The notes under the pieces were generated by a model that saw only the letters and a program-made list of their open reading frames with translations, had not been told where the DNA came from and did no database searches. A stretch of 63,141 nucleotides of DNA, filler included, from Choristocarpus tenellus KU-1152 (Eukaryota > Protista > Phaeophyceae), in NCBI GenBank assembly GCA_964200185.2. It is 9 parts of 9 records of this genome, joined end to end, with 100 filler letters (N's around TTAATTAATTAA, not from the genome) between each part and the next. Parts side by side here need not be neighbours in the genome. Positions count along the whole stretch, not along the records: positions 49,694 to 56,225 come from CAXNAD020007924.1; 8 more parts are not named here. The stretch is one strand, 5' to 3'. Positions 49,594-56,991 of this stretch are shown in pieces (the first letter of the stretch is position 1; each line of letters opens with the position of its first letter). The translations under genes were made by a program, and so were the position numbers.

Positions 49594-50017
49594 NNNNNNN
49601 NNNNNNNNNNNNNNNNNNNNNNNNNNNNNNNNNNNNNTTAATTAATTAANNNNNNNNNNNNNNNNNNNNNNNNNNNNNNNNNNNNNNNNNNNNCCCCCGC
49701 GCGCGCGAGGGGATGGTCTTGGTTAAAGACGGGGCAGCTTAGTTCATCTACAGAAAAAAAAACACGCCACAACCAAAAAAAATGGAAAAAAATAAAAATG
49801 CTTCATCGAAGTAATGATAAACAATATATATTATTATACATATATATATATATTGAAATGCACGATTCGAAATTAGTGTGGAGCGGAGCAGAAGCACGAT
49901 ATTATGCACGCCTCCAAATACGTGCACGATCATGGAGGAACACCCCAAAAATGAGATTGGCATGGGTTGCCAACAGGGTGGGGTATGAAAAATCCAGTCC
50001 TTGCCACCCCTTCTTAC

Positions 50018-51130
50018 CTGTGTAGTTTGAGAGTAAAAATCGTTGTCAGCCCGGAGTTTTATAGCTATGTAGCCTGCATTGGGAGGTCTGTGGCCGCTAC
50101 AGTCACTGCAATCAGCATCATCGTCGTCTGTAGTGAGGGAGGACCAGAACGAGGTATTGATGCCGCCCATTGAGTCCTCAGCTTGCAATTCGAAGTGGTG
50201 TTGAAGGAAGCCTAAGACAAAGACCAGTGTGTGTTCCACGTAAGGGTTGGCATCCTGTCCAGCACTGAGAGAGTGCAGATTCAAAAGTACAAGCGAAAAA
50301 ACGTTTGGAACTCAGGGTCAGGGAAAGTATTGTAATGCTTGGCAAGAGCCTTTGTTGAGCTGTAGGTGTTCCTGAGGTGGCATAGTGGTATGAGAAGGGA
50401 ATGAGGTTCTAAGGGATAAGGGCTGTGGGTAGCTATCAAGGCAACCGTCATATCCTGGTGCAGGGAAAAGGGTTGCCATTCCCGCGTAAGAGAGTCGAGT
50501 GTTGATATTGGAATGTTACGTGGAGAATGTTAAGCGTTTGGGGAAAAAGAATGTGTGTGCTTCGATCCCTAAAATCCATCGATGCTGAAAAACGCTTAAG
50601 AGGAAGCAGACGCATGTTTGATCTCGAACTGAAGTAATAAAGGCGAAACTGAGATTTCCGCTGCTGGGACCTCACTTGCCTGGGGAGGAGGTTGGGGAGG
50701 GACCCATCCGTGTTGAAAAAAATCTCGTACCAGTGCCGGCTGTGGAACTGGGGGCTTTCCACGAGCACGCGAAGGCAGGACTTACCCTCCAAGTGGGTAT
50801 ATGGAGAAGCTACTGGAGGCTAAGTGTCGGGATGTACGCAAGTGGGGAAGGAGGATGGGTCAATACACATGTCTACCCTGGGGATACCTACACTATGCCA
50901 CTAGTGCAGTGAGCAAGGCGAGGACATCTTGGTGAACACATAAAAATCGACCTTCCATACCGCACAGGAGAACATTCAAAGGCAACGGGTAACACACTTT
51001 TTCGTTTATCCACTTGATAGAAGTGTAGAACCTGGCAGTGGAAGCAAGAACGACCCCTACGTTCGGTCTTTCAAGTACCAGGTAGCCTCCAGCTATCAAG
51101 ACCTTTCCTGGAGCTGATACAGTACTGTCG
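50018..51130 (-). CDS. PMK: Phosphomevalonate kinase, ERG8/GHMP type, N-terminal exons (3' part beyond contig end; start exon uncertain, possibly up to 51329)
   Basis: Exon ~51125-50998: TVSAPGKVLIAGGYLVLERPNVGVVLASTARFYTSI. Exon 50819-~50676: ..LRVLVESPQFHSRHWY. Exon ~50264-50018: ..NPYVEHTL..IAIKLRADNDFYSQ. These are the hallmark ERG8/plant PMK motifs SAPGKVL..GGYLVL, SPQF, NPFVE and NDFYS. Confidence 0.92.
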
Positions 51131-52060
51131 GAGATATTTTTGCATGAGAGAATAGATAGGGAATTGAGGTGTAGAGGACACACTCATTTTCTGAAGCAAG
51201 AATGATAGTGTGACAAGGAGAAGAACCGTGGTGGACATGGTTGAAGGCACGCAAAGCTGCCATGATCTTAAGCAGGGTCATGTCAACAGTGTAGCAGCGA
51301 AAATATTCCATCATCTTCGCTTCCTGCATAACTAAGAAAGATGCCTTGACCTGGAGATTTGTCCTTATGTTCTCGAAGCATCAGATCAAGAACTCACATG
51401 ATCCCTGATCGATTGAGATTGAAAGAACTTCTCTTTTTCTTTCGCCGCATGGTATAATGGTTCCCCACCACACCAAGAATGACGACAATTGAAGCAGCTA
51501 GTCTTAACAGCTTTGCACTTCGAGAGAGGGGCATGATGTTGCCAAACTTGGTCTTGATAAGGACGACCACGCAACATGCCTATCGTTCAATTTGAGGTAA
51601 ATATATTTGAATGATCCCTAACTCTACTATTTTTCAAATTCGCCAACTTTACACTTTCTATCTCATCTCTCAGTTCATCAACTAGGAAGTAGTTCGTACA
51701 TGATCGAGTTCGGAGCAGTTGCTCGCCGAGCCAGCAATTATGAAGGCTACAGAGGACCTGTTCTTAGTGGGTACTCTGTTAGGGCAGGCGATTTGCTTCG
51801 TTCAAAAGATAGCGAAGGCAAGAGTGGACGTCACGACATGTGAGGAACATGGTGGCATGTCAAATCGCTGTACTATATCGAGTTCCTGATCTGGCCCGTG
51901 CACTCGAGTTTTCTCTTGTTCGCAAATAAAAACTAGGCGTTCGTTTGTTATGTCGCTTGCCGTCTTCTACAGCTTACCTATCAGCCGATCTCTTACCACA
52001 CGGTGCATCCTGTCTTGTGCTTCCTCACCATTCCCCTTCTTTCTTGCAAGAAATTCGCAG

Positions 52061-54201
52061 CTGTCGATCCTGCGTGTCTCTGCTGCGACGGCTGTGGACC
52101 GTGTAAGCCAATCCATGCGCTTGGAAGATTCCTTAGACCAGACTGTCTTATCTGCCAAAGAGCTGTCTGCCTCTGTAGTTGCAATGGTCTGTGGCACACT
52201 TTCATCCTCCCACCATCAACGTAGTGGCACTCCAGTGCCAATGATGGTAAACAGGGGGCAGAAGGAGTATAATTTCAAAAACCTTGACGAATACCTCATT
52301 AAAGTCCGCGGCGAGCTTGATCGGCGAGGAATCTCGTCTAAGATGTTTCAGGCGCAGCTACTCCTTGATTTGCAGGCAGAGGCGCATCGCTTTCAGGGAG
52401 CACCCTCTACTAGGGAGCCTTTGTCGAAAGAAGTGAGGACTAAAGAGAGAGGAGGGGTATGTCCTGGGGCTGAAGAGAGCTACACCTATTGTAGAGAAGC
52501 ACCCTCCCTCCTGGGAATAGTCTGGCGGCTTCACGAGTCAGGCCTGTTGCCCATGTCACGCCTGCTTGAAGCGGAAGAGGCATTGCCCCCGCCGAACCTG
52601 AGGACTCCAGAGGATCTCCTTGGAAATTTCTCAGACACCCTTGTGGACGAGATGAAGAGATTGACTTTACCTCCTCCTTGGGATGGCTCAAGACAAGTAA
52701 CACGCGCACACACACATCCCTTTGCGGAATCGGTCCCACTAGCAGACGGTTCTGGAGGGGCGAGGGTGGGGCAGTCTTCGAATGACCGCAAGTTATTCAC
52801 CAACATAGCTAAATATCTCTTCGATCTGGGCTACGGATATTGCCACGTGACTGGAGCTCCCCTTGCGCTGGGAAGGGATGGGAGATCCCATCCCTGGGGG
52901 AGTCGCAACATCAGTGCGACGGAATCAGCGGGTGGGGCAGGTCTTTCAAGAGAGGGGATGGGCGAGGGTGGACAGGAAGTGTTGGCATCAATAGCGGCAA
53001 GGGGTGTGCTTGATAGACTATGCTGTGGTGGGGACCTCTTCAGGTAAAAAACGTTGTTTTGACTGAAATAAGGAGTAGGGTTATTTCTGATGCATAGGCT
53101 TACGCTGTTGATAGTATATTGTAGTATTTGATTCTGATATAGGTTAGGATCAGGGTGAAGTTCAATGAATTTCAACGCATGGAATGGAAGGTGTGCATTT
53201 ACTTTTTCTTCTTTCCTGCTAACCAAATATTGGTATGGATTATATGGGGAGGGTACGGGCATAGTGACTACTGTTGATCGTTGGTTTGCTGTGGGATGTG
53301 TGGGGCATTCAGATCAATGGGAGCAACGCAATTGATTGCAAAATGGAGGGGGGGAAACATTGTGACAGGGTGAACCATCCTGTTGGCCCAATCTTACAGT
53401 TCTGATAAGAGTATTCTGTTGATGTGCCATTATGTATGCATGTATTTCTTTTCTATGCAGTGCTTCCAACCCTATCGATTTCGGATTGACTCGAATGCTG
53501 AGGGAACAGATGTAGCAGGAGACACCTATCTTTCTGCTTACAGGGCTGTATATACAATTTATACAAAAGCAGACGACACTGGCGTTTTGAGTGACCCCTC
53601 AAGATCGAGTTGCTAGCTCTTGAAATCTGACAATGGATTTATGTGTTGAAAATCAAACCATTTTTCTTTTCTTTCAAACTGGTATAAAAGTGTTCATTAT
53701 ATGGTCCAGGGGAACTTGTTTGTAGCGAATTGGGTGTATTGGCACTATTTGGACGTACTTCATGTCTCTGCAAGGTCTGCAGTACCGATAGACTCAGGTT
53801 TATGGTCAGGGTTGAGCGAGACGGGGGCTACAAGTCAGGGAGAGGCTGTGTGTGCTGCAATGGTGGCCTGTGAAATTGGTTGAATGTACGCAGACCTGAA
53901 TTATGACTTGTAGAGTGTTGATTAGTGAGGACTATGTGTGTCATAGTGTTGAATCGCTGTTGGGGAGAAGATTACCCTTTGAGGGGATTTGCAGTGATTT
54001 TTTTTTTAAAGGTGCCAGCTGCGGTTGGATTTCACTGTAGTTGTGGTACATGGTTGATCATTCTATAGCCTCCAGTAGGCGTTCATATGTACTCAAATGG
54101 GTGTGTTGAAAATCAGTATTGATGGTAACATACACATACACACACATATATTACATACATGTATTGGGGTTTGTTGCAGAATGTGTAGGCGAAGGAGATA
54201 T

Positions 54202-54244
<43 letters not shown>

Positions 54245-54775
54245 AAAAAAGGGAAAATAATATCTTCATCACAGAGTGATCACCTCAGCGAGGTGTGTGT
54301 TGGTGTACTGAATTGATGCGTTCGCCCCACAGCACCATCAAGGGCCCAGAATTAGCTGAGCAGATGAGCAGGACCAGCGAAAGGAAATGGGTCAAAGTAT
54401 CTTGGGGGAGGGGTCGGTGTCCGTTTTTCACCCTTTTTTCGATTTTCACTTTTTTGGTATGATTTGGTCGCACGTGTCGGATTTGAAATGTCAGCAAAAA
54501 AAAGAGTTGTTTGACTGAAACGGACGCCCCCTGACACACACACACACACACCCTAGATACTTTGACCCAATCAGTAGGCTTAGTAAACATCTACCCCTTG
54601 GTCTATCCAACACACACACACACACAAACACACTCGTGCATCGATTTCAGCACCATCGCAAACGCCATCCATCCCCTTGCAGAAATCAACACTCTTGATT
54701 GAGTGCTGTACTGCTTCTTGTGTGCCACAGTGAGTACCTTTCACCCCATCTCCAATTGTGGTTCTACCCCCCCCG

Positions 54776-54808
<33 letters not shown>

Positions 54809-55491
54809 ACCCCCCGCCATCAGTGCTTCATGTAACGGGAGCAGCACAGTGAGCGATGGAGATCAGAGCTCCATGGTTGCTCGGACTGTCTGCCTAGCCT
54901 TGCTCGAGGCTGTTGACCCCATCCGTCATAGCTCAATGGGTGAGGACCACCCGCAAGATGATGCCCTTGCTTGCAGCAACGACAATGGTGTCAACATGAC
55001 AACCAAAGGTATACCTCCTTCCTCTGCATCCAATGCTGGAAGAGTATCAATAGATGAGAACACGCCTTCCTCCTCTTCTTTGTACTCCTCCTCAGCGGCG
55101 AACAGCACCCCGGCAGCCTCCACAGTCGAAACAAATCAGGATGCGGTTCAGGTTGTGGTTCCAGTTTCAGGGGGCGATGGCGGCAGTCTCCAAGGTGCTC
55201 CTGGGAATACTGCAAGTGCGAAAGCAGGAGGGGCGACAGAGGTAGCTGGGGGAGGAGGGGATAAGAGAGCTGCTAAACAGGGCGTTGTTGGAGGAAATTC
55301 AGGCGTTTGGGTTTGTCCCAGTGGAAGGAGAAGCTTGGGGGGTGAGGAGCTGCCAGACAGGGCGATGCAGGCGTTCTTAGCTCGGCAGTTACGAATTTTG
55401 TTTGAGAGCAGGGGCGGGGGGGCATCGGGTACCATGGCTGATGGGGGGGGAGGAGGATGGAGTTTGAGTACAAGTCATGACTCTTTTAGAG
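52061..55491 (+). CDS. FANCA: FANCA-like protein (Fanconi anaemia group A homologue), N-terminal exons
   Basis: Exons 52061-53043 and 54824-55491 join in phase 2; a short first exon possibly spans 51740-51766. Colinear blocks versus remembered human FANCA: LSASVVAMVCGTL~[35 protein letters not shown]~[37 protein letters not shown]~[34 protein letters not shown]~LKRFFSHTLTQIL..WSFARTH. The CDS itself is high confidence; the identity is moderate. Confidence 0.7.
54205..54240. repeat. (GA)n microsatellite
   Basis: Seen directly, within an intron. Confidence 0.95.
54389..54568. mobile_element. MITE family C (~180 bp), full copy in FANCA-like intron
   Basis: aat|GGGTCAAAGTATCTTGGGG...CCCTAGATACTTTGACCC|aat. 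Internal sequence differs from families A and B. Confidence 0.85.
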
Positions 55492-55781
55492 GTGAGGTTT
55501 GTGTTTTATGTTGCTGCTTCACTGTAATGGAATGAAGCAATGAATGGAGGGCCTTCTGGCAGTGCTGTAGTTAGTTGGCTTGGCATTGTGCGTTTCAAGT
55601 GCTCTAAAGGCGGTGTCGAAATGATGTGGACAGTGGATGAGGGGAAGAGCGTGGGTCGGTTTTGGTTTAGATTTTATGCAAAGTGTATGTTTACCTGCAG
55701 ACGGGTTAGGGCGTCTCATACTGTCCGGTTTTCAGCGTGGCATGTCATTCTGGTCGCTCTACAGTAGGTCAAACCAGAGAT

Positions 55782-55878
55782 TTGATGTGATGCAATGCGA
55801 TGCAATGCGATGTGATGTGATGCAATGTGATGCGATGCGATGTGATGTGATGTGATGTGATGTGATGCAATGTAATGT
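55782..55878. repeat. Pentanucleotide microsatellite (TGTGA/TGCGA/TGCAA)n
   Basis: tgatgtgatgcaatgcgatgcaatgcgatgtgatgtg... seen directly. Confidence 0.9.
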
Positions 55879-56991
55879 GCACCGTGAATACGGAAGTGAG
55901 AGCTGAGGTAACACCCTAACTCTCTCTATATATATATATCATACCATTTAAGAAGTACACTGGATGCAATGATACCGTTAAGTATTTCTTGTCCAGGTGG
56001 AGAGAGGTGGTCTTATGCGGGGGGGATAAAAAGAAAAAAAAGAAAAAGAAAAGTGCTCTCTTGATTTTTTTCATGTATTGATAGTGTTTCTTTTTATTAT
56101 TTTATTTTATTTTATTTTTTGAGTGTGGTGCGTTCCGGTATGTGTTTGTTTTGCTTCCTCCCTGTGATTTTGATGTCTTGTGTGTAATGAACTGCGGGGA
56201 GGGCTATGACTCAAAGTATTGGGGGNNNNNNNNNNNNNNNNNNNNNNNNNNNNNNNNNNNNNNNNNNNNTTAATTAATTAANNNNNNNNNNNNNNNNNNN
56301 NNNNNNNNNNNNNNNNNNNNNNNNNGAAGATCCACTTTGTTCTCACGTCTTGACTTGTAGTGACGAAGCCCCATCTCTGAAGATGCTCATCACTCCTCAA
56401 TTTGCACTTGTCCAACCATAACCTTGAACCCTCGGATACGATTCGTCTTTGGTCGTCTGGTCCGTCTTGCCAGGTGATTCTCTTCGCCACCTTTGCCTGA
56501 GTGAACCACACCGCCACAAAATAACACGATTTACAATAGCCAGTATATATAAATATATGTACGCATCTTCATCCTCTTCCGCCCTTTGCGGTAGGTCGGA
56601 TATATGACACATGGAGGTATATATTATTAATAATAACCATTCGCAGTATTCTCTTTTATATCTTCCTACCCAGTACATTCTGTTTTAGGTCAGAAGGTTA
56701 TCTAAAAAATAGTGTGGGGTGATGAAGAAGATAGGGTTAGGTATTGAAAAGAAAATGCAGGTAGGATAACTGGATGAGATCGGATATAGGACACGGGAGA
56801 TACTAGTTATGAATAGTAGCCGTTTCCATGGTATTTTTTCCCTCACTGAAGAAGATGATGCATGCTTTTACCCCTGTATTACCTTGATGGAATTGTACAA
56901 AATTTCAAGGTACAACTAGCTAGTCCTTGCCCATGTCCTTTCATGTTGAAGGACTTGACTGGACGAGGTCATATCCGACACATCGAAATTG

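Follow-up and report, generated by a model that had tools for sequence, protein, structure and literature searches.

In the Fanconi anaemia (FA) core complex, a ubiquitin ligase that acts in DNA repair, FANCA serves as a large, all-helical scaffold subunit. The human protein has 1,455 amino acids, and the N-terminal region of animal FANCA contacts FANCG. A 2009 survey assigned most FA core subunits to an ancestral metazoan, and pointed out that orthologues with conserved structures and diverged sequences may have escaped detection (PMC2730050). Later work followed the Fanconi_A_N domain back to choanoflagellates (PMC6792448), reported FANCA homologues from early-diverging fungi (PMC11061109), and placed FANCC, FANCE and FANCF in plants (PMC10085685). 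In the animal protein, the part called arcC and the C-terminal HEAT repeats bind FANCG (PMC7102982). The arcC part and HEAT 13-14 also form the dimer interface. Full-text literature searches for FANCA in brown algae and other stramenopiles retrieved no such report.

In this report, we describe a FANCA-like gene of Choristocarpus tenellus, an early-branching brown alga. The window is the whole stretch of DNA that was analysed, 63,141 nucleotides in which nine parts of this genome are joined end to end, and all positions count along it. Positions 49694-56225 are the entire 6,532-bp contig CAXNAD020007924.1, which carries the first exons of the gene, or its 5' third, on the plus strand. A first-pass annotation had proposed a FANCA homologue here, and had described FANCA as usually restricted to animals. 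That description is outdated, because FANCA or its N-terminal domain is on record from choanoflagellates (PMC6792448) and from early-diverging fungi (PMC11061109). The proposal of homology is supported. We conclude that the brown-algal protein is very probably a remote homologue of FANCA, and that the plus-strand sequence from 51398 to 56225 very probably holds the 5' part of the brown-algal FANCA orthologue.

Relatives of the gene in brown algae

We show that this is a genuine gene, expressed and spliced, and that it is conserved throughout the brown algae. When a profile of its main exon (52051-53043) was compared with 1.84 billion representative proteins, 19 relatives were found at E <= 1e-3, all except one of them (18 of 19) with values below 1e-30. 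The named relatives are brown algae, and they include Discosporangium, a member of the same basal order as Choristocarpus. All of the short relatives break off at one shared exon boundary. Several Ectocarpus species and Scytosiphon have full-length orthologues, 1,887-1,907 amino acids long and with the same N-terminus, and the Choristocarpus contig covers the equivalent of only about their first 335 residues. None of these brown-algal proteins carries a Pfam domain or a protein name.

The first-pass annotation had quoted five blocks of sequence as resembling the N-terminal region of human FANCA, separated by low-complexity inserts. All five blocks are present. In an alignment of 21 brown-algal sequences, the conserved columns are exactly these blocks, and the spacers between them vary in both length and composition. 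Because the blocks coincide with the conserved columns, we regard them as real conserved elements rather than products of chance.

The two ends of the gene appear to be organized in different ways. In many brown algae, some 820-1,020 C-terminal residues are encoded by one continuous ORF that is apparently a very long single exon, and the N-terminal part is split by introns.

Comparison with FANCA in sequence and structure

At the level of sequence, the relation to FANCA is barely detectable. The HMMER check against Fanconi_A_N that had been proposed came back negative: no Pfam model for FANCA (Fanconi_A_N, PF15865; Fanconi_A, PF03511; and related models) matched the ORFs, 21 N-terminal sequences or eight long orthologues, even at E <= 10. 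FANCA was likewise not found among PDB sequences by phmmer and hmmsearch with the ORFs, the Ectocarpus orthologue and profiles of whole-domain alignments. One profile of 88 positions, which covers two helices ending in the motif W-LH-G...LLE, had a sole PDB match at E <= 10, and this was human FANCA (7kzp_A, residues 175-199; E 0.5, 14.1 bits), a score that is not significant alone. A control profile made from the neighbouring two blocks had a single, unrelated chance match in the PDB at E 1.2 and did not find FANCA, so the match to FANCA 175-199 by itself proves nothing. It also repeats the similarity that lay behind the first-pass proposal. No PDB match was obtained with a C-terminal sub-profile. 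Among the five quoted blocks, the W-LH-G...LLE block alone thus aligns with human FANCA at the level of sequence, at this non-significant score, and the quoted resemblance of the other four found no confirmation in sequence.

Structural comparison was based on two AF2 models. The first covers the main-exon domain of Choristocarpus and was built from a five-sequence alignment. Its mean pLDDT is 57 and its pTM 0.58, with confident helices (pLDDT of approximately 80-86) lying between inserts that are predicted to be disordered. In the AlphaFold and Foldseek check suggested earlier, Foldseek against the PDB returned no significant match for this model, with FANCA only at rank 38. Residues 24-333 of the model superpose on FANCA 103-284 across all helices. 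FANCA was absent from the results of an exhaustive VIA structure search with this model; the VIA cluster representative presumably lacks a modelled N-terminal domain. The structurally matched chain has 1,250 modelled residues, and two chains per entry have the FANCA sequence. We therefore take this chain to be FANCA, as no other subunit of the complex is known to be that long.

The second model comprises residues 780-1887 of the Ectocarpus orthologue and was built from a 22-sequence alignment. It is poor overall, with a mean pLDDT of 46. Its first 430 residues or so are usable, and the part equivalent to arcC, which makes up about two thirds of the model, is unreliable, being mostly below a pLDDT of 50. 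In an exhaustive search over tens of thousands of folds, the best structural match of algal residues 818-1232 was the HEAT solenoid arcN of FANCA (residues 632-947), and FANCA stood 3 Z units above the field. In the structural alignments, identity to FANCA is 15-17%, a value that ranks first or close to first in both tables when long natural matches are compared. The two matches are colinear and proportionate, in that algal residues at approximately 25-250 correspond to FANCA 103-284 and residues 818-1232 to FANCA 632-947. The sequence match to FANCA 175-199 falls within the first of these ranges. As modelled, the algal protein has the N-terminal helical, HEAT-like fold of the FANCA N-terminal domain (NTD), an arc-shaped solenoid like arcN, and the domain order of FANCA.

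Each of these results is modest when taken singly, and spurious matches arise easily with helical repeats. The protein could be viewed as a large HEAT/ARM solenoid specific to brown algae and without shared ancestry with FANCA, its resemblance arising from generic helical-repeat geometry and one chance motif. ESM-atlas feature searches and an atlas fold search yielded nothing beyond generic ARM/HEAT or TEL2-like leads whose scores were too low to be useful. We nevertheless judge this explanation unlikely. Two independent domains, taken from different species and used in separate searches, both have FANCA as their best match and in colinear order. The lead of 3 Z units and the high rank of FANCA by identity also argue against it. 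Generic HEAT/ARM solenoids such as SF3B1, importin-13, STAG1 and MIF4G domains score at least 3 Z units lower than FANCA and have a lower identity; the N-terminal domain is matched by none of them.

A diverged solenoid of the FANCI or FANCD2 type, in place of FANCA, was suggested by Foldseek, whose top matches for the Ectocarpus model of residues 780-1887 were the FANCI chains 8a2q_B (E 9e-4), 7ay1_A, 3s4z_A and 3s51, with no FANCA in the top 50. A second look at the C-terminal model by VIA listed FANCI together with generic HEAT proteins. This candidate was rejected after the exhaustive structural comparison, in which algal residues 818-1232 went to FANCA 632-947, and it now seems highly improbable; we found neither a Pfam match to FANCI or FancD2 nor a best structural match to the ID2 solenoids.

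We show, in predicted models, two separate regions for which FANCA is the best structural match, arranged in colinear order. Because these regions were modelled and searched separately and both give FANCA as the best match among tens of thousands of folds, and because the sole sequence match lies inside the first range, chance convergence is very unlikely. Very probably, the FANCA sequence has diverged so far in brown algae that Pfam and HMMER no longer recognize it, and disordered low-complexity inserts break it up, with the fold and the domain order kept.

The comparison with FANCA of human (7KZP) and Xenopus (6LHS) can be drawn as follows. The algal protein is likewise large and all-alpha; its NTD is best matched by FANCA 103-284 and its arcN-like solenoid by residues 632-947 of the FANCA C-terminal domain; the W-LH-G...LLE motif corresponds to FANCA 175-199; and the domains have the same order and roughly the same spacing. 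Unlike FANCA, the algal protein is approximately 1,900 amino acids in length, contains many disordered low-complexity inserts, has no match to the Pfam FANCA models, shares only 15-17% identity, and resides in a stramenopile.

Exons, transcripts and the end of the contig

The first long ORF, used as a protein query, retrieved a deposited "unnamed protein product" of Choristocarpus tenellus that is 614 amino acids long and 100% identical. This protein is the exact translation of join(51700-51839, 52051-53043, 54824-55535). RNA-like contigs of a public run (X2) contain two plus-strand GT..AG joints, 51594>51672 and 51839>52051; the intron removed at the first of these is legible as GT..AG on the plus strand only. 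An upstream transcribed exon, probably 5' UTR, occupies 51398-51594, the range covered by an X2 contig, with a provisional start. It is followed on the same strand by the exon with the start codon (51672-51839; ATG at 51700-51702) and by the main exon (52051-53043), which encodes the helical N-terminal domain, including the W-LH-G...LLE motif, as conserved helices between low-complexity inserts.

One X2 contig is unbroken across 52051-53043 and stops exactly at 53043. The low-complexity inserts of the main exon therefore belong to the mRNA, in agreement with the earlier description of inserts between the blocks, and they are predicted to be disordered in the protein. Intron 3 extends over 53044-54823 (approximately 1.8 kb; GT at 53044, AG at 54822-54823), and X2 coverage is absent over 53072-54259, which is most of its length. 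The joints, the contig that stops at the exon end and the mostly uncovered intron 3 show that the FANCA-like gene is transcribed and spliced.

The next exon, at 54824-55491 on the plus strand, lies within the deposited protein. It consists mostly of Ser/Gly/Ala-rich low-complexity sequence and has a conserved helix at its end (approximately 55356-55433), which is matched in tblastn by residues from about 315 to 359 of Ectocarpus and Scytosiphon (E 0.008-0.037), in colinear position. A possible alternative in-frame intron lies within this exon at 54939-55094, where one X2 contig skips 156 nt (GT..AG, joint 54938>55095). The joint is tentative, with just 29 nt on its shorter side, and removal of the segment would delete 52 Ser-rich low-complexity codons.

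The main exon and this exon correspond to what had been described as two long in-phase exons. Two long plus-strand ORFs are indeed present (51950-53047 and 54699-55535), but the true exons are shorter, namely 52051-53043 and 54824-55491 or 55535. They are not literally in phase, since the two ORFs occupy different genomic frames and are linked by a split codon. The proline run that opens the second ORF is noncoding and derives from the poly-C tract of the intron. This tract is 49 nt long (54767-54815) and directly precedes the intron-3 acceptor.

A GTGAGG donor at 55492 marks the beginning of a probable next intron that extends to the end of the contig (55492-56225, plus strand). No additional exon up to 56225 was detectable by tblastn with the orthologues. 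The deposited model ends at a stop at 55533-55535, 14 codons past this consensus donor. Because a strong donor follows position 55491, the final 14 codons of this model are probably intron read-through. The orthologues extend approximately 1,550 residues further, so the contig end has probably cut the 614-aa model short, and about 1,500 codons of the Choristocarpus gene probably lie off the contig. X2 coverage drops after 55448, and a low level persists beyond the putative donor at 55491.

It is extremely improbable that the N-terminal part and the C-terminal solenoid were joined by gene-prediction error, or that the Choristocarpus copy is truly 614 amino acids long: the contig end some 700 bp past the last exon, the in-contig stop that closes the deposited model and the low X2 coverage beyond the putative donor are consistent with such readings, but five independent models from two genera, Ectocarpus and Scytosiphon, unite both parts in proteins of 1,887-1,907 amino acids, and the strong GTGAGG donor at 55492 is located exactly where similarity to the orthologues ends.

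Proposed role, evolutionary setting and neighbouring elements

If the gene is taken as the 5' portion of a FANCA orthologue, analogy with animal FANCA suggests that its product would be the scaffold of an FA-type core complex. The contig would encode a FANCA-like N-terminal helical domain that would contact a FANCG-like partner. The remainder, off the contig (approximately 1,550 residues in Ectocarpus), would include an arc-shaped HEAT solenoid like arcN of the FANCA C-terminal domain, a solenoid expected to form dimers and to dock on the ligase module. The protein would bind counterparts of FANCG and FAAP20. In crosslink repair, and possibly in meiotic recombination and the regulation of crossovers, this complex would stimulate the FANCL-dependent monoubiquitination of FANCD2-FANCI.

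The brown-algal protein is most probably a new, highly divergent member of the FANCA family, in a lineage where the family was previously unrecognised. In its occurrence outside animals and in pointing to an origin before Metazoa, it resembles fungal FANCA (PMC11061109) and choanoflagellate Fanconi_A_N (PMC6792448). However, those cases belong to Opisthokonta and came from proteome scans based on domains and homology, whereas the brown-algal protein belongs to SAR and is missed by those models. The FANCC-FANCE-FANCF proteins of plants are a precedent for the conservation of "missing" FA core subunits outside animals (PMC10085685). They form a different subcomplex, the substrate-recognition module, and were demonstrated genetically in Arabidopsis, whereas the algal protein is known from sequence and models.

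On balance, we lean towards the view that FANCA, possibly together with the rest of the FANCA-FANCG-FAAP20 module, was already present in the ancestor shared by opisthokonts and stramenopiles, which is approximately the last eukaryotic common ancestor, and that its apparent absence from most non-animal lineages reflects failure of detection through extreme sequence divergence. FANCA would then occur in lineages separated by a very deep split among eukaryotes, and the view that protists and algae have a "minimal FA pathway" would need revision if FANCA is this old. An unannotated brown-algal gene of approximately 1,900 codons would also gain a name. Furthermore, its orthologues would provide a very divergent set of sequences from which the truly conserved features of FANCA could be recognized, for example, the W-LH-G...LLE helix and the arcN solenoid.

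Several other elements were observed on the same contig. On the minus strand, 50680-51577 holds a gene for an ERG8-type phosphomevalonate kinase, with introns at 50820-50997 and 51125-51397. Its exon ORF at 50896-51183 aligns with positions 1-43 of TIGR01219 (E 2e-13). The first exon of the kinase gene overlaps the 5' UTR exon at 51398-51594 in antisense; the kinase and FANCA-like genes therefore lie head to head, and their 5' ends overlap.

Rfam and tRNA scans of 49694-56225 gave nothing above threshold and no tRNA; the sole Rfam lead, SCARNA7 on the minus strand of intron 3 (54483-54649), scored 21 bits against a gathering threshold of 65 (E 0.054). The same intron contains a segment (54260-54655) at which the summed contig depth reaches approximately 40,000-186,000 in all three runs, compared with 5-90 elsewhere, and at which many contigs have loose ends. 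The segment is either a dispersed repeat present in very many copies or an RNA-like element of high abundance. An (AG)18 run lies just upstream, at 54204-54240. Downstream of the last exon, positions 55779-55879 form a GATGT-based tandem repeat with periods of 5, 15 and 30.
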